The notes: a model not told the origin generated them from the letters alone. Shown: positions 16,133-30,608, numbered from the stretch's first letter. The stretch is 64,000 bases of DNA from Thalia democratica (GCA_965202585.1 OZ241829.1:15314001-15378000), one strand, 5' to 3'. Program-made: numbers and translations.

Positions 16133-19100
16133 TTAAATAAATAACTAATTAAACTAAGTTATATTAAATGGAAGAGCTATTCTAGTTTAACTGAAATTTC
16201 AAACAAGAAAACTTAATATACCTTAATTAATGAACAAAATAAAAACTGGCCTTAATTTGCCAAAATTTAAATTTAGCCTGAAATTTTGCAGTAACTTTAC
16301 ACTGGTCTGACAGGCCACAAAGTGTGTGGAAACTCTTTGAAGCAAAAAATCCAGCTAAGGTGATCAAAAACAAACAAGAGTAACATCAAACTATCCTTTT
16401 TTTTCTTTTCAGAATTAGTTATCTCCCTCTTGAGCATGCACTTTGAACACAGTCCATATGTGCATTACTTAATGAAAATAACAACTGTTAATCAAGCATG
16501 AACATTTATAAATACCATAACAATAACAACCAGGGAACTTTCAAAGGTTTCAAGGTTCTAAAAACCATTCTCAGATTTTAGATAAACAATCTATCTAGTT
16601 TTTTATTATATTTATGTGTGGGCTATGGGTTTCAATTTTGTAGTGTTAAATTGAAGTTTATAAAGGGCCATCAGTCCACTTTTAAAAGTGGTCACAAGTT
16701 GTACTAAAAGTTTAACAAGCCTAAGTTTTTGAAAATAATTTTGAAATTTTTCAAAAGTTAAGTGTTAAATTCAATAATTATATTAAATAACCATTAGGAG
16801 TTGCTTGAATTAGTTTAAAACTTTAATCAAACTTGTCACAATAGGTTTAAGAGTACAAGATTATTCTTTTGCTTTTTTTTCTATTCCTGCAAAAATTAAA
16901 AACCATGGGTAATAACTACTGTATATAATAAATGAAATGCAGATTTAATTTTTTTATCATATCTTCATCTATATCATCTGTTATTTAGCATTTATAACCC
17001 AAAGAAAGTACAAGAGCCTACAATAGTTTTATGCATCTAACATAGCTTTTTGAGCAACATAAAAGTTGCAGCCAACTTTTGAAATTTGGTCAGATTCCTA
17101 AATGTTTCAATTCAAATACAAATTAAGTAGGGCGAATTCTCTTAAGTTTTTTGTTCTAGAAACATCTATTTCATAAATGATGTTTGTAAAGTATTTGTTG
17201 AATATTATTTTTATTAAAAATAAATTTATATACATATATAAAACAAAATCTCTTATTTTTACTAAAGATTTCTAAAAGTTCAGACGATTATTTGTTTATT
17301 TATTTGCTCTTGCCATCTCCTCAAGTTGTACGTATATGCAATATATAATTATTAAAAAAAAAAAAATTCACGAATAAATTCAAGCAAGTTATTATTACCT
17401 TCTAAAAAACAGAAAATGCGTGTATTGCGTGCAATAAGAAACAAGTATCTAAATAGTTTTGTACGGTTGTGAAGTTTTATAGATAAATACAGATAAATAA
17501 CACTGTTATTGTATATTAAAAAAGATATAAATATAAAACGCAGAACTTAAAAATACTATTTTAGTAAAAATTTGGTCTGGGTAGTTTATCAATTGTTATC
17601 ATAAAACATTTTTAATGAAAAAAAAAACATATTAGTTTTATTTGTCTCGTATTTTAGTGAGTGCAAACTGCAAACTATTTAGTATTGTACTCTGCAATAA
17701 TTTAACCTATAAAAAAGAATATTTCAACTATCTTTGATGCTATAACGGACAATGAGCAGAAAATTTTATATTTGTATCTGCATACACAAAATGTATATAA
17801 AATGTTTTAAAATTTCAAAAAAAATATTACTATTTGACTTTTAAGTTTTTATACATCTTTAAATTTATACACACAGTAAAACACTTTTTTTTATTAAAAA
17901 AGTAGTATCAATAGAATAATCAAGGTTTCTTAACTTAATGCATATAACTTACTATTAAACCGTAGGGTTTTTCTCAGTTATTAGGAATAAACTTTCAAAA
18001 ACTCAAAACTAAACTTATTGAAAAATGTTTGTACAATTTACTAAATCCGAAAAAACATAACTAAATACCGTTTTTTGTAATATATAAAACCATTAAAACA
18101 TACGTGAAATTTTTATTTTTATTTTTTGAAACGTTCTTAAGTACTTGAAAAATCTTCGCCACTCAAAAACTAATATTTTGAAAGAGGACCATGAATTTTA
18201 ATAATTATTATTATTAAATATTTTGATATTAATAATAACCAGTTTTAATGTTTTGACTGGGTTTTTAGAGTTTCTAGTATAAAAATCAACTTTACTTTGT
18301 TAGTTAAGTTAGGCAGCTTGTTTATGCACCACTGATTCAAATATAGAACTAAGTTTATGTTTATTAAATCTATTAATTAACCCTAAAGTGTTATTCAGTA
18401 TTAATATGTTACCTTAGATAAAAATACTTGTAAAATGACCTTATTAAACATTGTTTACGCCTAAATAAAGTTTTACGTACAAATCAAAAGTTATTTAAAT
18501 CTTTAAGTATAGTTTAAGTAGTGGCAAAAAATATATTAGTTTAAATGCTTTACTTAACATCTATTACAATAAATATAACAAAGCTCTTTTTTTTAATGAC
18601 ACTTAATAGTTATAACAGAATTTTAAAAAATTAAGCTTATGCAGTTGTGTAAAAAGTCTTATTATTTTAAACTATTTTATTTGATGTATTAGATTTCAAC
18701 ATATCTTAAAAAAAATTTTTGAGTATAAGCTTTTAATTTGATATATATTTGTATAAATAGAAAAAAAATAGGAGATTAATTGACCGGTAGTTTATAAGAT
18801 AAAACTTGTATTTTTTGTTTTAACTTTGATTTGTTTACATTGTTGCTAAATAAAACATACACGTTAAAATTCTGTATTTTATTTTTGCTCGAGGTTAAAT
18901 GATTATACTATGTATGCTGCAAAGCAACAAAAATATCACATAAGAATTAAATAATTTAAAAACAAAATTAGAACATAAACAAAATAGAAAATATTTATAC
19001 AAAAGGAGTAATAAAACTAAATGATAAGCTTGGTTATTAATTATTAGTTGTAAAACAAAAAGAAAGTATATATAACGATATTAAAAAAAAAAGTCAAAAA

Positions 19101-19178: not shown

Positions 19179-22100
19179 TCAGAGACATATTTCCTTGCAC
19201 TTTTCTTCAACTTCATATCTGCCGAGACACTTATTCAGCCCATCCCGAGGACTTAAAAATAATATCAGCATTTTAAGTAAATAACTATTTATTAAAACAG
19301 TAGCTAAAAATGTTTGTGTTCGAAAAAAATATTGCTAAAGTATACAGAGTTTACTTTTACTGCTATCAACAGCTTTACTTAAAAAGTTTCAAAACATATA
19401 AAATAAGTTAACATTTTTTTGTAGACTAATCAACTTTTACTTTTTCTAACAAAACGGCCTGTTTCTAATTGAATCTGTAATTACTAAAAAAACTGTTTTA
19501 AATATTTCATAATACTAATCAATAACGACGATTAATTTGAAAAAACTTGAGTAAGCATTGCTACCAGCTTTAATGACATTTAAAGTTATTAGTTTTTACC
19601 TGAACATTGAAATACTGAACAATTAAACTGTTTACTTTTCCCTGCAGGCGTGCACGTAAGTCTGGTATGTCAGCACGCATTTGAACTGGCACGGGTAGTC
19701 CCTTGTGACGTCAAAATCGAAATACTCGCTCCACGGGGGCTGTTTAATTTCCTTTTCGGTCGTCTCGTCGGTGCATACGTTGTCGATACAAATCTTCAAA
19801 ACAAATTAGACTAATTTATAAAAGTAAGTACTATAATGTTTAACTTAGTATTAAAATTTTGAACGCGAAATATTCTTTAATATCAAGTTAAATAAGCTCT
19901 TTACAAATTCAGTAAATCGAATAGCCTTTTTTAGTTAAGACAAATAACTATACTAAAATATTCAAAACAAAATAAATATTCAAAAAATAATTCATACGGT
20001 ACTTGAATCGCTTAAAAAGTTGTGATTTTTAATATTAAACTTAATTTATTATCATCATTATTATTTTTGTAATGTAAAAATATATTTTCAAACAACTTAC
20101 GCCGTTTTGGGCGCACTTGGTCCCTTGTAACGGGTCGAACACGTAGTGGTCGTCCGTAATTTCCTTCCGATGACGCCTTCGCAACGCTCGTCGTGACGGT
20201 GTTTTCCGGAAAGAAAAAGGGTACCGGTACAGTTCCACGCCCCTCTTGTAAAATTCAAACTCACTCGACTTTGGAATGCACACCGCTTGCTCGCATGTTA
20301 TTTTCTGTTGTGAGCTTGTAAATTGTGTTTTGTAGAACAAATATTTATTTTTAGTCTAATTGTTGAGTTTAACAAGTAATCAGTTGCTAAAAGTGAAAGC
20401 TTTACAATTTAGTTAATAACATTTGTTAAGGTTCTTTTTTATACCAAAATTTTAGAGGTCTTTTCGTTTGTAGTTTGATTAACAGTATTACTTTTTTTTG
20501 TACAATAAACGTGGTTTTTCAATATAAAACAACATAAAAGTTTTATCAGGCAAGCTAATACGTGCATCGAAAATACAGCTTAAAAGCAGTTGGAATCAGC
20601 TTGAGTCAATAGTTTCATTTCATTAAAAAAAAATACTTGTCACCTTTTTGTAATACACGTAGTCCGGAGACACTAGCTTGCACTGGGCGTCCAGGCTGAT
20701 TCTCGACCCGGGGTACTTGTAGGGCGGAACTGGGGTTAGAAATGCGATCCTGTCTCTCGCCAACAACCGGCCGTTGGTGAAGTACTTGCTGTGGAAAAAT
20801 AACGGCTGTAAGTTATAAGCGATGTGGAAAACGGTTTAAAGTTTTTTATGTGTTGGCAAATAATTTTCATAGTGTAATAACTTTGTCGAAAGTATAAAAA
20901 CTAAAAGTTTTAAGGGCTTGATTAAAATTGAAAGTATTTTTTGTCTGTTGTCAAAAAATCTATAATGTTTAAATAGTTTGGTCAAAAAAATTAAAATTGT
21001 TAGTTGTAAGGGCTGTAATAAATATTAAATCAAAATAATTTTCTTTCAGGTACAAAATTATAATCAGTACTGGTGAAGTATTTCCTATCAAAAAATTATG
21101 AGAAATGAAATATCAAAAATACAAAGTTTTATTTAAATTTGAAATAGCGAACTTAAATAGATGGACTGTTTGCTTTGTTAATTAAAAAAATGTTTAGATT
21201 TCTGTTCATCAGAAAGCATTTTGTTAATTTTTATAAACCACAGTCGCTTATTTTTTGGAATTCACTGGTTTAGTTGATTGTAAGCAAAATTTTTTGTATG
21301 TTGTACAATAAGTGAATATCTAAAATACAAACCATGAAAGCTATTAAAAAGTGTAGAACATTTTTTGATTAATTTATTCAATTCATTATTGTACTTGTCA
21401 CCATAATCATATAAGGTGATAAATTATAATGCTACTAAGCATACTAGCTTCTATTTGTACAAATTTTATTCTTACAGTAGCCTGACATAAACATTCCATG
21501 TCAAAAAAATCTGTTACAACTAGATTTTTTGTTTAATTACCTAGTTATATTCTAAAACATAACTCACAGAAGAAAGTAGTCAAATATGACTCGCTTGCAG
21601 TTTTACCTTAGTACTTTTAAGATGTTACGAAACAGATTAGTTTAATATATCTTATTATTTTATTATCAAGAGCTTATGTTAAAACAAAACTGAACTTACT
21701 AAATAAAATAGTTAAACTTGAATAAAAAACTTGTAAAATAAATCGTTATAAAAGCAAACGAACTGTAAATAAACAAATTACAAATACACTATTTTTTTAT
21801 AAAATTGTAAAAGTAATAAACAAATTATAAAATTTAAAATTTAATAATAAAAACTAAACTCACTGAAGAAAGTAGTCGAACATGAGTCTGTTGCAATCTG
21901 ACCAGCCTGTAATTTACTTTATATGTTAATACAAAAATATATATATATATATATATGCAAGGATTATTCCTTAAGGCACAACAGGTCTCGACAATTTTGG
22001 TTTTGGAGACAAAGTTAATTTTTAAATTTATTTATTTACAAAGGCAACAATGTTTCTCCCCTAAGGGATCTTCAGGCCTGCAAATTTATTTTATTTTATT

Positions 22101-25100
22101 TTTATTTATTTTTTTGCAGGCCTGAAGACCCCTTATAGGAGAAACATTGTTACCTTTGTAAATAAATATAAAAATTAACAGAAATATATATTTAAAAACA
22201 CATCAATGTAAACCAACCGATGTTTTTCAGGATTCCCTCCTTGGGAATGTAGTCCATGATGTAGTGGGTGGTCGCGTTGGTTTGCTTGGGTATCCTGCAC
22301 TCTTCGAAAGTGTGTCTCAGCCCGATCCTGTTGAAAAGAGTGTACGTTGAAAAACAGAAGTTATCGATTCTCATAAATGTATACATCTCTTACAAGTATA
22401 TTTTCGTTATTGTTTATTGAACGATAAAAGAAGCGCTCAAAAAGTTTGGTCTAAGGACCTGTGGTGTACAAAGGAACCTTTCGGCTATCGAGTCGTACAC
22501 CAAATTGCACAATCATAGATGTAGTGCAGTTATTACAAACTGTGAGTATCAGTTGAAAGTTTTATTTTAAAGTGTTAATGATTTTCAAACACTATCAATT
22601 TCTTTTTCAATTCGCTGTTTTAAAAAACCCAAAAGGGAGAAATATTTTTGTTGTCAAAATAAATGTTCAGTACAGTTTATCTTGAGTACTATTGCGTCTT
22701 AATAAAGAAGGACGTACCTTCAAACAAAAGATTTATGTAATTAAGAATCTAATGCTGTCATTTCAAACTATAAGCTTTAGTTGGAAACTTTATATTCAGA
22801 GGTTTTTCTAATTTTATGTCATTCAAGTTTAAGGTCTTGTAGTCACTTGTAGTCAAAAACAAAAAAACACTTATGACAAATAGCTTTTTTGTCTAGCTAG
22901 CTGTCTAATTTGCAAGAGCGTACGAAATTGCACGAGGGGACAAAATTTCACGGCTGCACAAAATTGCACGAATATACTTTGCATGAAGCGTAACTTTTGC
23001 ACAAAGACACTTTTGCACGGAGACATTTTTGCACGATTTTATTTTTTTTTTTCAGTACTCTTTAAACTTTTTTTTTTAATCAATTTTACCCCTAACCCTT
23101 ACCCTCGGTCGGTAAGTTATTATAATTTGTTTCTAATTTTTTTTAATATCACTGTTACCCCTAACCCTTACCCTCGGTGGGTAGCTTAATTGTTTTTTTC
23201 TACTTATATTATTTATCAGTTATTCTTTTGTTTTTGTTTTTTCTATCACTGTTACCCCTAACCCTTACCCTCGGTTAGAAACTTTTTTTTTATTAGATTT
23301 TTATAGTTTTTTTTCTGCTTTTTTTTTTGTATTTTTTTACTCTTGTAGAAAAATGTTACTCGTGCAAAATTGACCTTTGGTGCAAAACTGTCTTCGTGCA
23401 ATTTGGGAGCTTTGTGCCCTTGTGCAAATTTGGCTTCGTGCAATTTTGTTCTCGTGCAATTTAGTAACCTCGTGCAATTTAGACCCGTTCCCATTGTATC
23501 CTGCTGCAACATTGAAAGCAAAACCCTACATGTTTTGAAATTTACATGTAGCAAATAAAAATGTAGTCTCATTAAATATGATAACAATATGTTCGTTTCA
23601 TTTACCGAAGTTCAAGCGACTTCAACTATTACGTATTAAAACTGTTTGTTGAACTTACAAGTGCCCTATTTCGTGAGCTGTGATATCGGCGGTTATGGCG
23701 TACTTGCTCCAATTCTCGCCAACCCCGACCACAGCACTGGCTTTCGTGTTGCCTATTGACTCGATCATGTCCACCCGTCCTGTTTTATTTTATTTCAAGT
23801 TCAAAAAAACTTTTAATACAAGTACACAGTTGATTATTCAGATTGACACAATATTTATTGTATAAAGTCATCATCATTAAATTTTGAATTATTGTTGTTT
23901 ATTGAATGGTATAAGAAAAACAGTCTAAACACGTGGCCTAAGAATCTGGTGAGGAACCTTTCGGCTATCGAGTTGTGCATTACACGCTTTTACAGTCTTT
24001 TACGAGCTCGTGAAAATTATTTTCTATATTTTGAAGTTTTAAAGCTCAACGAACAAAACAAACGATAATAAGAAAAATAGAAAATAAAATAAATGAGTAC
24101 CTCCCCCGAGGACGGCGTCAGAAAAGTAGATAACCGCGTCCGCTTTCCTGTAATCACCGAACAGATTGTTTCGGGACAGGAAGTTAGGCAAACCGATTTC
24201 CGACTGATGGTTCAAAAGAAGCTCCTGGTAGCCCATGCTGCTCACTTCATAAGGTGAAAAATAACCTTGCAAGTTCAGATCCTTCCTCATTGTACTGCTA
24301 CCGGGCACAAGTGAATCAGACTGTTGTTTTTTTTTTAATTCAAAAAACGTACGACTTTTTATAAAAACAAAGTAAACTTATGCTGGTTGATATACAATTT
24401 TTTGTTAAAAATTTTAAATAGAACAATCTCCAGGGCAAAAGTTTAACACACTGTTTTTTTTTCTAAGTTTCACTAGTTCAAGTACATTTAATACTTGTAT
24501 TTATTAATTTACGCATTACCAGCAATAATTATACAATACTTTTTTAGGTTTCTTGATAATTATAACTGAGTGATAAAAGCCTCAACATAGCTTATCGATT
24601 TTAAATTTTTCATTTACTATATAAACGTTTAACCTCAGACTTGGTTAGATATTTGATACTTTGCAACTCTATTTCAAAAGGCCGGTTGAACTTGGTGTAG
24701 TAGTGGGCAACCTGTAATGCAATAGTTGTTAGTTTCGCAAACAAAATAATGTGAAATCTAGTGAACTGTTATTACTAATTACTAACGAATAGTATCTCTT
24801 TTTATCATTAGAAATTAAAAAAACTTTGCAAAGCTTTTGTTTAAAGCTACAGTAGATTTGTTTTGCCTCTTAATTAAAAAGTTATTGTATTTATAAAATT
24901 CCAGTTGTCTGTGAAGTTTTGAAGATAATTTTATTGTTATATGTTTGTATGTATTTGAATAGAATAAAATGAAACACTAACTTAACAAGTTTTTAATTTG
25001 TACGCTGAGCCAACTTAGAAAACTTTAAAAAGTTACATGTAAAAACCATCAACTAAAACTGTATTTTATTTATTTAATATTTTGATGCTTCTACTTTGCA

Positions 25101-28100
25101 TTCTTCGAGTATAAAATTTTATTTTAAACAGCTTAGAATGCTTAAGGTGAAAAATTCAAAATATTGTTTTTTAAACTTTTCTTTATACATTTTAAGTTGT
25201 ATATATGTTATAAGAAACTTTTTTAAAAATATTAAAGCTTAGCTCGACTCAATCAATAATACATTAGGTTAGACTTAAGAAAAATTATACTTACTGTAGG
25301 TCTCATCAGGTATTTGAACTGAAATATTTAAAAACATGTAGTTTTATACCCAATATTAAACAGGACTAACTGAAAACAGGACTAACTGAAAAGCTTACAA
25401 GAAATCTAAAAGAAAAATATTTGTTTAGGACAAAATTAAACCCTTTCTATTTGTCTTTACAAAGTAATTTTCGTTTTACCTGCCCATGTATAGCCCATAC
25501 CCACTTTTCTTGGTTTACTGACCTCGATCTCAGCTTCTGCCCAGTCTCATAATCCACGATGTACATAACGTTTAGCCTTTTTGTTTTCAGATTTTTTTGT
25601 TTGAAGTAAAGGTCGGCATTGCTCAGCTGATTGTACGATTTGCCAAGTCTGAGCGCTGTTTCAGTGTTTTACTTTCATATAATTTTTATTTACATTTCTT
25701 AGAATATGAGAGAATCAACAGTTACTGTTATTTATAATATGTTTATCATTAAATATCAAACAAGTTTCGATTTATCACCTGCCAATTAATTTTAACGTCA
25801 GTATTTGTACTTAAAGTTACAAACATATTAAAAAAATCCAGCATAACTCTAGTAAATGCCGCTGAGTTTAAGGCTACAAAAAAAGCAATGCCTACATCCG
25901 GGTTGCAGCAACCCAGTGTGCATACAAATGTACCACTGTTGCATGCATGAGTCAATGGATGAAACTGCCATGAAAAAGAAATGAGTGATCACATATGAAA
26001 TATCATTACTGAGGTTCAAATAATATTGTTTTATTTTTTTTAAAGAGTTTACATTAACACCTTCTGTGCGAATTATAAACTATGTCTTAAAAATTAAAGG
26101 TTCTCTTTGTATAACTTTTTAAGCTCTGATGTGAATTTTAACTATACATCGAAACTAAGTTTACTTAGAAGGACATACTCGAGTCCAATTGTTTTTTTAT
26201 TTTTGTACTTTACACGCACCTTTAACTTTTGTTACAATGCGTTCCATCATAGAAAAACGTGTTAATAAATTGTGTACTTTAAAAATTTTAGTCGTATATG
26301 AGTAATTTATAGACACAAGTATGATGATATGATATTTTGTTTGAAACTTGTTAAAGTGCTAAATACTTTATAAGTAAAGCAATATTTATTTGGTACAAAA
26401 CTAGTTTATTTTTACATATATTTTAAATTTTATTTGTTTGCTTCAGATTTACTGTTTGTTTTTTAATAAATATATTTAAATGTATGTAAAAAAATCTCTA
26501 ACGTATATTTCAAGTTTAATACTTTACAATCAAACAAAGCATATTATCAGAAACTTTCAGAAAAACTAAAAAATTATTGCAAGTAGGAAATATAAATATA
26601 ATCAAAGTATAAAAATTTAAATTTTAAAATTAATTAATTAGAATTAAATAAAGTTTGATAACAATTGCTAAAACGCTGTGCATTGTGTAGATTATGAAGC
26701 TTTTATTTAGGACTTTAAATTAATAGTTAAAATTGTTTAAAATTTATTAATTTTTAAATTAGTCTAAAACTCCAGAGTTTGCCCGGGCAGGAATATCATA
26801 AACAATTATTAAAGATTAATGCAAATTAATTAGATGAATTATTTATATTTACTGCTATTAATTAAAAAATTTAAAATATTTAATTAAACTTGGTTTGTAA
26901 CTAACTTTAGTGCGGGTTATTCTAGATTATAATGAAAAAAAGTCTTGGTGATGAAATTTTATACGGTTTTTTCAGTTTTTCTGTATTGCTTTCTTTGAAA
27001 TACGATCGCACATAATTTGAGTCAATTTATGAGTGTTGTACTTCAACAAAAATAGAAGTGTTTTAAATTAGTTAAAGAATATACTAAAATCAAAATATTG
27101 TAGATATTTAATAACAAAACAGTAATTAAAACTCAAAGTACTAATTTTGATAAAAACCTTTAGCTGTAAAGCACAAGTCGTAAACATTCTTAACAGGCTC
27201 GAAAAACATGTGCACTAACTACCCACCCTAAACAATTTCAGGGTCTACTTAATTATTAAGAGTTCACAACAAAAAATAAGTGAAATAAAAAAGTGATAGC
27301 CCGTATATAAAAGTTGTTTTCACCTGTGTTATGTATGAACCGTCTAGTCCATCTTTTAGACCGTTTTAATGTTTTGGGAGGTAGCTTGTAAGTATTTCCA
27401 TCACTCATGCTTAATGTCTGTAAAATTTTTTATTTGGTGTTTTAATTAAATGATAAAATTTAAATATTATATGAATGTATTTCATGACCGTAAATCTAGT
27501 TATATTGCTTTTAAGAACACCTTAAACGTTATAAAAAATATCAATTAGTTAGTAGTTTCAAATGAATAACGACAAGCCAGTACTTAAATTTTATGAATAT
27601 AGTTTAATTAATTTTTTTTTGTTTAGATATAGGGACAAAGAAATCTCAAAGTTTTTAACTAAAAGTAGTTTAAATAAAACTAAGAATGGTTTTAAATATT
27701 AGAAAATAAACTTTAAACCTGAAATAACTAGTTGTGAACTAAAACACAACTATACTTTAAAAAAGAAATTACTAAGTTTTGTTTTAAACCTAAATTTCGA
27801 ACAAAAAGTTTTGAAACAAATAGTCAATAAATGCTGCTTATTAAACTCTTTTTAGCAATGTATTACCACTTCAGGGCAAAGTTGTATGTCAGCGGTGACT
27901 GATGTGTCATAATTGTCGGTTCCTTGATAAGCACATGTGTCATTTGTGTCATTAGGAACGTCAACTCGCAGTATGAACGGCATATTGTCCTCTATTCGCA
28001 CAAACAGGTGAAACCGGTTAATCTAGACATTAAGACGAATTGCTTAGCAAAGTTTAAAGTTACAGTTTGAATATTTCATCGATTAAACTTAGCTCATTGT

Positions 28101-28785
28101 ATTTTTTAATATTAAAAAGTTAGTATGAGATCTAATACGTGTTCACCAAAATTTTACTGTCTTTACAATTTTGCTGGCGTGCTTTTGTGCTGCAAAATTA
28201 TCAAAAAGGAACAAATGATACTTAAAGTACTTATATTTATTTTATATAGATATAAATTAGTAAAGTTGCTGTTGTAATATAATGTTTCGGAGAGACTAAA
28301 ATAATGTGTTAAATTTTTCAATTGAAAAAAGTTTCATAATTTTATAACATATTACTTACTATCATTGTTGTGTTAAACTTTTCTGCAATGAAATCTTGTG
28401 TTAACTTCAATGCGTTTTGTAGATCTTCTCCGATTTTGTAGCCATTGTGTTGAGAAACATATATTTCTGTGATTTCTTTGAATTCCACAGGTGCACAGTT
28501 CGATTGCTGTAAATATTAACTAATTAAAAACTTTTATTTTTTACTTTTTAGTTTTATTTGTCTGTTTTATTTATTTGTTTAATTACTTACTGTTACAAAT
28601 GACGGTAACTATTTATTAAAATTAAATAAACTTTTTGCCTTATAGTAGTTAGCGTGGACTTAATATTGAATTTTTCAAAACAATTTTTTGAATAAATTTA
28701 TTTTAGTCTTATAACTATAAAGTAACTTGAAACTTACCAAAAAGCTAAACCCAAAAATTAAACCAAACACTAATAAAAACTTCAT
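19179..28785 (-). CDS. Secreted ADAMTS-like zinc metalloprotease (metzincin), about 598 aa: signal peptide, prodomain, catalytic domain, disintegrin-like domain, one TSP1-like repeat
   Basis: 15 phase-consistent GT-AG exons (minus): 28738-28785, 28379-28506, 28147-28189, 27867-28022, 27324-27417, 25480-25655, 24634-24711, 24101-24320, 23659-23779, 22218-22327, 21864-21906, 20644-20788, 20101-20304, 19636-19793, 19179-19251 (1797 nt). Signal MKFLLVFGLIFGFSFLQSNCA; prodomain TCAYQG...LCPEV; furin RSKR; HEIGHLIGLRH zinc motif; Met-turn HYIMD; WSDC; YPGSRISLDAQC; GTKCAQNGICIDNVC; PWSEY...CQFKC...CRENP...KCLG...KCKEIC. An extra exon near 25.9 kb cannot be excluded. A 63-nt 5' UTR intron is likely at 28794-28856. 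Confidence 0.88.
21568..21610 (-). pseudogene. Degenerate tandem duplicate (pseudo-exon) of ADAMTS-like exon 11
   Basis: Aligns with 21864-21906 including the GTGAGTT donor (TGC AAG CGA GTC ATA TTT GAC TAC TTT CTT vs TGC AAC AGA CTC ATG TTC GAC TAC TTT CTT). The acceptor AG is lost and TCA has become TAA. Confidence 0.75.
22016..22178. repeat. Near-perfect inverted repeat (about 55-70 bp arms, about 28 nt AT loop)
   Basis: ATTTATTTACAAAGGCAACAATGTTTCTCCCCTAAGGGATCTTCAGGCCTGCAAA ... TTTGCAGGCCTGAAGACCCCTTATAGGAGAAACATTGTTACCTTTGTAAATAAAT. Confidence 0.85.
22410..22530 (-). mobile_element. tRNA-like SINE family, copy 2 (ADAMTS-like intron)
   Basis: Near-identical over about 90 bp to the copy at 940-1027. 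Confidence 0.65.
22912..23492. mobile_element. Foldback-type non-autonomous element with TGCACGA subterminal arrays and telomere-like core, copy 1
   Basis: Left arm has tandem (T)TGCACGA, right arm tandem TCGTGCAA ending GACCCGTTCCC; core carries three CCCTAACCCTTACCCTCGGT units; homologous to 28902-29470. Confidence 0.75.
23896..24010 (-). mobile_element. tRNA-like SINE family, copy 3
   Basis: Contains core GGAACCTTTCGGCTATCGAG plus flanks similar to copy 1 (TTTACAGTCTTTTACGAG). Confidence 0.55.
25359..25390. repeat. 16-bp tandem duplication
   Basis: AACAGGACTAACTGAA repeated twice in an ADAMTS-like intron. Confidence 0.8.
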
Positions 28786-28901
28786 TCTAAAACCTGTTAA
28801 CATACTAAGGTTAGAATATTATTTTTAAATTAAGCATATTAAATGATCAAACTTACCTTTAAGAACTACAAAAACTTAAGAATTTAGATAATATATTTTT
28901 T

Positions 28902-29470
28902 GGGGAGGTGTCAAATTTCCACGAGCGGAAAAAATTGCACGAGGGGACTAAACTGCACGAAGACACTTTTGCACGAGGGAACTAAATTGCACGAAGAAAT
29001 TTTTGCACGAGCAAACAGATTAGATTTTTTATACATTTTTATACTTTTACTAATTTAATTTTTTTTATAATTAATTTAGTTTTTAAATTAATTTTATTTT
29101 ACTATCACTGTTATCCCTAAGCCTTACCCTCGGTCGATAGTTTTTTTTTCAGTTTTTAGTTAGTTAATTTCTATTTATTAATTTTTCTGTTTTTTTAAAT
29201 AATAGTTTTATTAGTCATTTTTTTACTTTTATTTTTACTATCACTGCTACCCCCAACCCTTACCCTCTCAGTAACTTTTTTTTCTTTTTGTTTTTTTATT
29301 GGTTTATACTTTTTTATGTACATTTTTTTCTATTTTTTTTACTCTCGTGCAAAAATTACCCTCCTTGCTAGATTGTAACTCGTGCAATTTTGTCTTCGAG
29401 CAAAATTGACCCTTCGTGCAATTTAGTACCCTCGTGCAATTTTTTTTTCGTGCAATTTTGACCCGTTCCC
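28902..29470. mobile_element. Foldback-type element, copy 2 (immediately upstream of ADAMTS-like 5' UTR)
   Basis: TGCACGA at 28936, 28954, 28970, 28988, 29004 (alternating 18/16 bp spacing); two CCCTAA(G/C)CCTTACCCT-like core units; right arm ends GACCCGTTCCC; left end GGGGAGGTGTCAAATTT approximates its reverse complement. Confidence 0.75.
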
Positions 29471-30608
29471 ATAGTTTTCATTTCAAACTTTTATTAACCT
29501 CATCATTTATTTTCTAACTTAAGATCATTTATAAGTTTAAAGGTAATTTACAATAAAAAGTATTTTTATTTAACATACCCAGCTAAGATTCTAGAACATA
29601 GTTAACAAAATTAAAATTTGCTTTGATTAGAAAATAATTTTATAAAAACAAATCAAAACTCTCCTTTCAAAATTGTTAATTATAATTTAGTTTTTTAACC
29701 TAAATTAGTTGTTATCTCTTAAGTAAAAACACTGATGTCTTTATTAAATTTTGATAAATAATTTTGCTTTAAGCTAAATATGTAAGCAGTTTAGTTTTAT
29801 ATAAAAAATTAGAATTTAACTGCCTATTTATAGTTAAAAATACTTAAGTGTTTTAGCATTTAGAAACTTTTTATGTAACCGATTTATTGTTAATATAGTT
29901 TAACAAATAATGATCTTTTTCTGATTAGCTTTAATTTGTAGATTACAGTTAGTGTAACTTGGTATGTAGACGTTTAAAATTAGTAAAAACCAGCTTTAAA
30001 TGGTGAACACAACCATTTTATAAATGATTAACTTTACAATGGTTAGATTTAAAGTAATTTGTAGAACTAAAAAAAATAATAAAATAGGCTTTAAAAAACG
30101 TTTTCTAAGTAAAGTAATAGGTAAAGTTAATTCTTATTAACTAATTAAAACAATATTGTCATTTATTTGTGTTAAAAAAATCAAATAAAAGTATTTTGAA
30201 CTGTACTAGTGCATTTTTTAAACCATAAAGTTTTTAAACGAAAACTGTTTTAAGAACTCGTCATTATAAAACAATAATATAAACAATAAAAAACACTTTA
30301 AATTTGTGAAAATATTCCTTAAATGCCTTTTAAATTGTATTTTTAGTTTTTATTGTCGATCCTGTAAAATTACTAAGGTTAGATATAAAACCATGTAAGT
30401 TATCACTAAAGTACAAAACGTTGTGGTAATTTTTATTAGTTTCGAAATAAATATAGTTAATTTAGTTTGAATTTTGTTTTACTAATGTTTTTTATACTAC
30501 ATACTTTTATGTTACTTTAAGACTATAAAATAGTAAACATAAATTTAAACTAATAAGTACTAGTAGTTTATGAAAATCAACAATTCACAATGATTTTAGA
30601 TTCCAAAT

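Follow-up and report, generated by a model that had tools for sequence, protein, structure and literature searches.

A predicted secreted metzincin of Thalia democratica with an ADAMTS-like order of parts, a variable residue after the zinc motif and no spacer domain

The stretch of DNA analysed here (the window) comprises 64 kb of the 802-Mb genome of the planktonic tunicate Thalia democratica (C5:15314001-15378000, about 27% G+C). Its minus strand carries, at 28785..19179, a gene of 14 exons for a predicted secreted zinc protease of the metzincin type. Every intron is bounded by GT and AG, and the spliced model of 1773 nt consists of 590 codons and a stop codon, with no internal stops. To check the exon boundaries, the gene was compared by tblastx and tblastn with 10 paralogous loci of this genome, in which donors and acceptors are found at the predicted positions, with matching phases, in nearly all cases. 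A first-pass annotation of the window had described a complete protein of 598 residues. Its start at 28785 and its end at 19179 have been reproduced, and the rebuilt protein is 8 residues shorter.

What had been regarded as a single odd gene is in fact one of about 60 paralogues that make up a fast-evolving family. A profile of exon 3, which codes for part of the propeptide, matches 61 loci genome-wide, and a profile of exon 9 (alignment A1), which contains the Met-turn, matches 67 loci, nearly all of them free of stop codons. The count of about 60 is approximate, and some of the unplaced contigs are perhaps duplicates. The family loci form tandem clusters on C1, C2, C5, C6, C7 and C8. A genome search with exon 12 gave weak paralogues, and at the 10 loci that were examined both the exons and their order are shared with this gene. 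Full open reading frames (ORFs) were assembled for the paralogues at C1:21.52 Mb, C6:20.63 Mb and C6:16.07 Mb. Nonsynonymous and synonymous divergence (dN and dS) were compared within two pairs of paralogues, one young (dS 0.05; dN/dS 0.34) and one old (dS 0.79; dN/dS 0.36), and the ratios show purifying selection. At C5:69.31-69.45 Mb, at least eight copies follow one another at distances of about 15 kb, six of them with an identical profile score (72.2 bits), which indicates a very recent tandem amplification.

The exons are listed in Table 1. An alternative start for the gene is an in-frame ATG at 28803, 18 nt upstream of the one chosen; the paralogue at C1:21.52 Mb starts with MKFLAVVV, and its exon 1 donor is at the matching place. 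Exon 2 shares 52-63% identity with six paralogues, whose splice sites are at most 3 nt from the prediction and in the same phase. Exon 3 is the most conserved exon of the family, with a mean column identity of 76% (alignment A3), and the furin-type site of exon 4 recurs at the same place in the paralogues as RRTKR, KRSKR, KRTKR or SRKKR. Exons 5, 6 and 10 were recognised through their tblastx conservation with the paralogues, among which the acceptor and phase of exon 5 are conserved. Exon 7, the most divergent of the catalytic exons and single-copy in a protein-level search, has equivalents of identical position and phase in seven paralogues. The first AATAAA downstream of the stop is found at 18883, at a distance of about 300 nt.

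Table 1. Exons of the protease gene and the additional intron of this copy (window coordinates)
Feature	Position	Strand	Content
Exon 1	28785-28738	-	start codon and hydrophobic signal peptide (MKFLLVFGLIFGFSFL)
Exon 2	28506-28360	-	propeptide, first half
Exon 3	28022-27867	-	propeptide motif C95-x-Y-x-G ... C114 (QLCPxV)
Exon 4	27417-27324	-	end of propeptide, furin-type site K-R-S-K-R139 / W140
Exon 5	25655-25480	-	start of catalytic domain, first strand ...LNVMYIVDYETG...
Exon 6	24711-24634	-	catalytic domain (VAHYYTKFNRPFEIEL...)
Exon 7	24320-24101	-	catalytic domain; conserved terminal strand ...R/K-x-A-D-A-V-I-Y-F-S-D
Exon 8	23779-23659	-	upper-rim strand and active-site helix ...AHEIGHL (H342, E343, H346)
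Exon 9	22327-22218	-	IGLRH352-T353-F, Cys357, Met-turn Y-I-M371-D-Y373, ...KNI
Extra intron	22217..21907	-	311 nt, mostly a dispersed repeat of foldback type, like a miniature inverted-repeat transposable element (MITE), flanked by GGTTGG and GGCTGG
Exon 10	21906-21864	-	G-W385-S-D-C388-N-R-L-M-F-D-Y-F-L, 'WSxC' C-terminal helix
Exon 11	20788-20644	-	linker and start of disintegrin-like module (YPGSRISLDAQC434)
Exon 12	20304-20101	-	cysteine module (C450, C455 ... QGTKC510)
Exon 13	19793-19636	-	I-C516-I-D-N-V-C521, W-x2-Y-x2-F ladder, C549, C553, C564
Exon 14	19251-19179	-	C575, C585, C589, L590, stop codon (19181-19179)

Two features of the family's gene structure may be recorded here. In the paralogues at C1:88.70 Mb (L027:4283) and C6:27.02 Mb (L028) the donor after exon 6 is GC (gcaagt), the other copies having GT, so that an apparent GC-AG intron variant occupies a conserved position in these two genes. 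A dispersed repeat, with the translation ...NCTKTKLHEGTKLHE..., is present upstream of the gene in the window (28900-29480) and in its intron 8 (22900-23520); according to tblastx, the NCTKTKLHEGTKLHE repeat recurs in or near paralogue genes at loci L028/L029 and L020/L021.

The order of parts noticed in the first-pass annotation, similar to that of the ADAMTS enzymes, is confirmed in the rebuilt protein. Residues 1-16 form a hydrophobic signal peptide, residues 17 to 139, approximately, a propeptide that ends in K-R-S-K-R139, and the catalytic domain extends from about residue 140 to about residue 397. It is followed by a six-Cys module (residues 418-521, approximately), which runs from Y-P-G-S-R-I-S-L-D-A-Q-C to Q-G-T-K-C...I-C-I-D-N-V-C and holds the collinear motifs PG..S.D.QC and GT.C...C...C. 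An Arg-rich insert of 13-15 residues within R484-K493 of exon 12 is unique to this copy (alignment A4), and the loop could bind a polyanion or serve as a second processing site. The last six-Cys module comprises residues 530-590, with the spacing C-x3-C-x10-C-x10-C-x9-C-x3-C, and is preceded by a ladder, W535-x2-Y538-x2-F541.

The zinc motif is split by an intron into ...AHEIGHL (exon 8, codons 23675-23659) and IGLRHTFEEC (exon 9). The sequence HEIGHLIGLRH, followed by TF and containing the intact catalytic Glu, had been noted before and is read exactly in these two exons. It has the metzincin form HExxHxxGxxH, with H342, E343, H346, G349 and H352, after which comes T353. The extended motif is retained in all seven intact paralogues that were assembled across the region, and a degraded copy at C1:21.79 Mb reads AHKIGH in its zinc helix. 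Metzincin families are distinguished by the residue after the third zinc His and by the residues around the Met-turn. The M12B hallmark, an Asp after the third His, is replaced by Thr353 in this gene. The first-pass annotation had taken this HT for the mark of a hybrid active site. Thr is no signature of the family, however, since the position is T, P or V among the paralogues (alignment A1): T in the gene studied and in three paralogues on C6, P in the cluster at C1:21.5-21.85 Mb, and V at C1:88.7 Mb and C6:27.0 Mb. Loss of the Asp is not confined to this family, because reprolysins of the same genome that are recognised by Pfam carry HN. These have Asn for Asp in the motifs HEIGHLLGM[KR]HN or HELGHLLGLHHN and are found at L034 (C4:36.02 Mb), L038 (C202) and L040-L042 (C5:23.05-23.09 Mb, C286). 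The residue after the third His looks like a relaxed, unconstrained position, rather than a hallmark of the M43 family.

The Met-turn is a more telling hybrid trait, which had been missed. M371 follows H352 by 18 residues (18-20 across the family members in alignment A1). This Met is invariant in the alignment and is also kept in fragments from marine metagenomes, which are described below, and the whole sequence Y-x-M-[D/N]-Y, here M371-D-Y373, is invariant in alignment A1 as well. At 13-14 residues after the Met comes W385-S-D-C388-N-R, conserved as W-[SA]-x-C-[NS]-R. In mirolysin, Met284-Asp285-Tyr286 contains a tyrosine switch like that of astacins, serralysins and pappalysins, the tyrosine being a zinc ligand or a transition-state helper that swings out upon substrate binding (PMC6949598).

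The reading that we prefer, at a probability of roughly 0.6, is that the gene codes for the zymogen of a secreted zinc endopeptidase, and that its family of about 60 loci in a planktonic tunicate most likely descends from reprolysin/ADAMTS (M12B) proteases by divergence beyond the reach of the Pfam models. A family hidden Markov model (HMM), built locally from spliced sequences, recovers all 12 of the fetched Pfam-positive reprolysin exons of the genome in a search of 1884 ORFs (E 1e-7 to 0.06), the best decoy being no better than E ~0.5. On L031/P0023, a canonical ADAMTS from this genome that carries PF01421 and PF17771, the family HMM scores 12.3 bits, which none of 3000 shuffles reaches. 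This alignment spans the zinc helix, the Met-turn and W-S-x-C-S-R, and a second, collinear piece contains L-P-G...Q-C; the PG..S.D.QC motif of the middle module is aligned to ADAMTS with an i-Evalue of 0.034. In the propeptide, the motif C-x-Y-x-G...C, with its 19-residue spacing between the cysteines, is invariant in the family (alignment A3), and hhalign places the C-Y-x-G...C of exon 3 onto the C-F-Y-K-G...C of the L031 ADAMTS propeptide (P=0.017). The Met-turn exon is placed by the same program onto the Met-turn/WSxC stretch of ADAMTS (P=0.003), and the counterpart of W-S-D-C-N-R of exon 10 in the alignment with a true ADAMTS of this genome is PWSACSR. Immediately before the zinc exon, three reprolysin loci have an ORF with a weak match to the exon 7 region of the family.

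The Pfam scans were made on the whole genome in six frames and on single exons. With single exons, protease models give matches in the zinc exon only, all of them below threshold. Reprolysin_4 matches this gene with E=0.013, and among the zinc exons of eight members Reprolysin_3 is found in five, Reprolysin_5 in four and Reprolysin_2 in one, with Peptidase_M78 appearing too. The best of the reprolysin-type matches (models PF13574, PF13582, PF13583 and PF13688) has E=7.8e-4, and M43, astacin and MMP models are never among the matches of the zinc exons. In the Pfam comparison of M12B with M43, which was proposed together with the original description of the gene, reprolysin-type models are present below threshold, exon by exon, and M43 is absent. 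The single propeptide exons gave no Pfam match. Matches of single exons to families of the domain-of-unknown-function (DUF) type and to an anti-CRISPR family were discarded as chance. In the PDB, the top matches of the zinc-exon profile are 4on1 (a putative metalloprotease II), ADAMTS-5 and snake venom reprolysins, none of them significant; matches to YdhK, a thymidylate synthase and a small GTPase were likewise dismissed as chance. No single one of these tests of an M12B origin is strong. Seen together, however, several matches to one ADAMTS, each of them weak but independent of the others and all collinear, weakly favour descent from M12B stock over descent from M43. Elsewhere in the genome, at C7:29153234-29153443, an intron-free frame of 753 residues weakly matches the C-terminal part of the Reprolysin model.

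A number of observations weigh against the preferred reading. No Pfam model reaches threshold on any part of the gene. In the whole-genome scan, PF01421 (Reprolysin) and PF19030 match no exon of the gene or its paralogues, and PF17771 (ADAMTS_CR_2) matches neither these nor anything else in the window. When the zinc motif is masked, 44 of 3000 shuffles equal the score of the family HMM against P0023, and similarity to ADAMTS beyond the zinc-site region is only marginally above chance (P ~0.015). The profiles of the disintegrin-like module (exon 12) and of exon 7 find nothing relevant in the PDB. A search of the ESM Atlas with the Met-turn exon places M43 clusters (0.85 and 0.81) slightly before reprolysin clusters (0.80); two exons were run in all, and every score is below 0.9 and thus under the trust level, so that these are leads only. 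The profile of the last module scores 0.2 bits against a true thrombospondin type 1 repeat (TSR), a value attained by 776 of 3000 shuffles. Its cysteines are spaced 3/10/10/9/3, those in the TSR of the canonical ADAMTS L031 3/10/11/9/4, and both the CSxxCG sequence and the Arg layer are absent from the last module; as the module is split by an intron, the Pfam scans never saw it whole. What is 'TSP1-like' in the degenerate repeat of the first-pass annotation is its cysteine spacing and its W-x2-Y-x2-F ladder; homology to TSP1 has no statistical support. Of the links to ADAMTS, that through this module is the weakest, and its spacing mimics that of a TSR. Finally, exon 9 is joined to exon 10 only if the repeat-derived insert of 311 nt is spliced out.

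The insert concerns the state of this copy rather than the descent of the family. If a few matches that are partial or contain stops are set aside, the Met-turn and the WSxC helix share a single exon at the other loci, about 60 in number. The matches of profile A1 at these loci span positions 1-50 (or 2-50, 1-49), and the match of the present gene ends at position 38. Palindromic arms are visible in the insert, for which a first look at the genome gave 562 candidates in both orientations, with identities of 79-98%. It is possible, though we doubt it, that this copy has recently been turned into a pseudogene by the MITE-like insertion, in which case read-through would yield ...KNIGWFTLMCF followed by a stop, with loss of the C-terminal helix and of both Cys modules. 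Such an event would agree with the position of the insert in an exon that is continuous at about 60 other loci, with the abundance and young appearance of the repeat, copies of which are up to 98% identical, and with the weak donor G/GTTGGT. Yet splicing from G/GT... to ...AG/G removes the element together with one copy of the flanking hexamer, and this precise cut brings back K-N-I-G-W-S-D-C, the consensus of the family, in the correct frame; for an insertion at random, the chance of being spliceable in such a manner was estimated at about 3%. Furthermore, GTT-type donors (gttagt, gttaaa) are common among the accepted introns of the family, all 14 exons are open, and the catalytic residues are all intact. 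Introns that were born from transposons and borrow their splice sites from target-site duplications have been documented, among others in the tunicate Fritillaria (PMC11282704). The insert at 21907-22217 is a candidate for the birth of an intron by transposon insertion, and the conclusions on the family are independent of its status.

Somewhat less probable, in our estimate, is a separate metzincin family that is specifically related to neither M12B nor M43, and whose resemblance to ADAMTS consists of generic traits of secreted proteases. The catalytic domain has two cysteines, compared with eight in ADAMTS, and the family-specific residues are unlike those of any described family. A separate family would also explain that no part is recognised above threshold by curated models and that PDB searches with the profiles of four exon alignments gave no significant match. 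Against it stand several weak and independent matches that are collinear along one ADAMTS, from the propeptide motif through the zinc helix and the Met-turn/WSxC stretch to PG..QC. The sub-threshold Pfam matches are, besides Peptidase_M78, of the reprolysin type only, and the exon 7-like ORF upstream of the zinc exon in three reprolysin loci, a weak match, points in the same direction.

A link to M43 had been drawn from the HT motif, and the catalytic domain could in principle be a shortened pappalysin-type domain joined to ADAMTS-like modules, with H-T/V-F and M-D-Y as ancestral features. The sequences GLxH[T/V]F and x-M-D-Y do fit pappalysins, as the Met284-Asp285-Tyr286 of mirolysin illustrates (PMC6949598), and the nearest named clusters of the Met-turn exon in the ESM Atlas are those of Peptidase_M43 given above. 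We nevertheless consider this origin improbable. PF05572 (Peptidase_M43) left the gene and its paralogues blank in the genome scan, in which it matched other zinc exons, and when exons were searched singly it matched none of the eight zinc exons and none of the eight Met-turn exons. From the third His to the Met, members of the family have 18-20 residues and mirolysin has about 50 (His234 to Met284; PMC6949598), and the calcium-binding segment that occupies this gap in M43 enzymes (PMC11925022) is absent here. In addition, the W-S-x-C-[NS]-R that follows the Met-turn is ADAMTS-like and aligns to ADAMTS, the propeptide bears the M12B motif C-x-Y-x-G...C and a furin site, and Pro is also accepted after the third His.

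The protein ends with ...C589-L590 and a stop, directly after the last of the six C-terminal cysteines. The first-pass annotation had remarked on this end and on the lack of a spacer, and both are conserved. The last exon was located in nine paralogues. In eight of them, otherwise only 35-60% identical, the stop comes 0-4 residues past the last Cys (...ACE*, ...VCQ*, ...ACLKS*, ...ACLKN* or ...MNC*), and the ninth, a degraded copy, has a tail of 16 residues. Comparison by tblastx with the paralogues reveals no conserved coding block downstream of 19185, and PF05986 (ADAMTS_spacer1) and PF19030 (TSP1_ADAMTS) have no match in the window, although they detect canonical ADAMTS genes elsewhere in the genome. 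That the gene model is truncated and that further exons for Cys-rich and spacer domains, as in a normal ADAMTS, are hidden in the 16 kb or so of AT-rich sequence between the stop and the next gene is, in view of the conserved stop and the two blank searches, very improbable indeed.

The scan for TSP1_ADAMTS also revealed two other sets of such repeats. An open frame of 4649 residues at C9:13182796-13196945 contains dozens of consecutive matches spaced by 336 nt and represents a giant single-exon TSR-repeat protein. At C2:57.67-58.16 Mb, about 50 matches in both orientations within 0.5 Mb suggest a large tandem array of TSR-containing genes.

Relatives of the family are found among short ORF fragments from marine metagenomes in the ENA, including Tara Oceans assemblies. 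In a protein search, exon 7 matched two such marine fragments, both short (P0001 and P0002); three further matches are long proteins that are probably spurious. The fragments P0024 and P0025 retain HTF, MDY and WSRCNRL. Two Tara contigs align to this very gene at a nucleotide identity of 74-80%, with 86-87% in exon 3 and 70-75% in its flanks, which points to an orthologue from a related species with exon 3 under constraint. Judging by this genome and the marine ORF fragments, the family appears to be restricted to a planktonic tunicate lineage. The earlier description as a lineage-specific secreted metzincin agrees with the signal peptide and with the presence of every catalytic residue, from which enzymatic activity may be expected. 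No tunicate family with such a design turned up in a search of the literature; since the curated protease models of Pfam also stay below threshold, 'undescribed subfamily', the term used at first, is a fair reading.

By combining these observations, it is possible to propose how the enzyme might work. The signal peptide would direct the protein to secretion. A propeptide of the M12B type (C95-x-Y-x-G...QLC114P) would maintain latency, which a convertase of the furin type would end by cleavage after KRSKR139. In the mature enzyme the zinc ion would be held by H342, H346 and H352, with a water molecule activated by E343 and with M371 forming the base of the Met-turn. Y373 is probably a swinging fifth ligand or a stabiliser of the transition state, as in astacins, serralysins and pappalysins, and the position after the third His, occupied here by Thr, would be free of constraint. 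The bond C357-C388 is probably the sole disulfide of the catalytic domain, a counterpart of the 'HDxxxC'-'WSxC' bond of ADAMTS. As the family ends without the Cys-rich/spacer exosite, the targeting of substrates would have to rest on the cleft and the two small cysteine modules.

As the family demonstrates, an ADAMTS-like protease can dispense with the Cys-rich and spacer exosites. The family is also a natural experiment on what the metzincin signatures do: in a large set of genes under purifying selection, with the body plan of an ADAMTS, the first signature drifts (T, P, V) and the second is fixed in the form known from astacins and pappalysins (M-D/N-Y), which is a warning that family calls based on motifs may mislead. 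Because the Pfam protease models are blind to the family at the level of exons, automatic annotation of such genomes probably misses it. With its tandem clusters of about 60 copies, the family points to a secreted function that is in heavy use in this planktonic tunicate, an animal whose extracellular materials are poorly known. A bolder proposal, which we put forward tentatively and regard as possible but well short of likely, is that the 60 or so genes constitute a new metzincin family, with an adamalysin-type scaffold, ADAMTS-type flanks, a tyrosine-switch Met-turn and a free position after the third His, that they are the dominant secreted protease repertoire of salps, and that at least one member has acquired a MITE-born intron. 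The roles of such a salp family might then be digestive, or might concern the turnover of tunic or mucous feeding net.

Among known systems, the ADAMTS enzymes (MEROPS M12B, with ADAMTS-4 and ADAMTS-5 as examples), represented in the same genome by L031/P0023 at C2:27.48 Mb, are the closest in plan. They share with the family the sequence of signal peptide, propeptide with furin site, catalytic domain, PG..QC...GT.C..C..C module and 6-Cys module, a gap of about 18 residues between the third His and the Met, and a W-S-x-C at 13-14 residues past the Met; the HEIGHLLGLSH of ADAMTS-5 is nearly identical to the zinc motif of the present gene. The family differs from them in that it ends after the first 6-Cys module without Cys-rich and spacer domains, in that T, P or V replaces the Asp after the third His, in that the Met-turn is M-D/N-Y instead of M-x-P, and in that PF01421, PF17771 and PF19030 fail to detect it. 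The middle module has six cysteines where that of ADAMTS has eight, a difference parallel to that in the catalytic domain. With about 60 copies, the family also exceeds the canonical ADAMTS loci of the genome, of which there are roughly a dozen. Secreted M12B enzymes without the usual ancillary domains are MIG-17 of C. elegans and mammalian ADAMDEC1, each of them a single gene, unlike the present family with its 60 or so members. MIG-17 contains a terminal PLAC domain but no TSR, the third His of the zinc motif is replaced by Asp in ADAMDEC1, and neither has M-D-Y.

The pappalysins (M43: PAPP-A, ulilysin, mirolysin) resemble the family in having Thr or Val and then Phe after the third His, and a Tyr two residues past the Met (PMC6949598), traits which are found here and are by themselves insufficient to define membership of M43. 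What sets them apart is the long segment for calcium binding that separates their zinc motif from the Met-turn, and they lack the M12B-type propeptide, the WSxC and the downstream cysteine modules. Within the tunicates, the Oik24 family of the Oikopleura house, with 8 paralogues, contains a ZnMc domain (PMC3390340), and the Tast proteins of ascidian sperm combine an astacin domain with TSRs (PMC6353882). Their catalysis is of the ZnMc/astacin type, and their partner domains are LDLa, EGF and multiple true TSRs. By their description they are, as the present family may prove to be, tunicate-specific secreted metzincins with multiple paralogues that are tied to extracellular matrices, to which the Tast proteins add the presence of TSRs.

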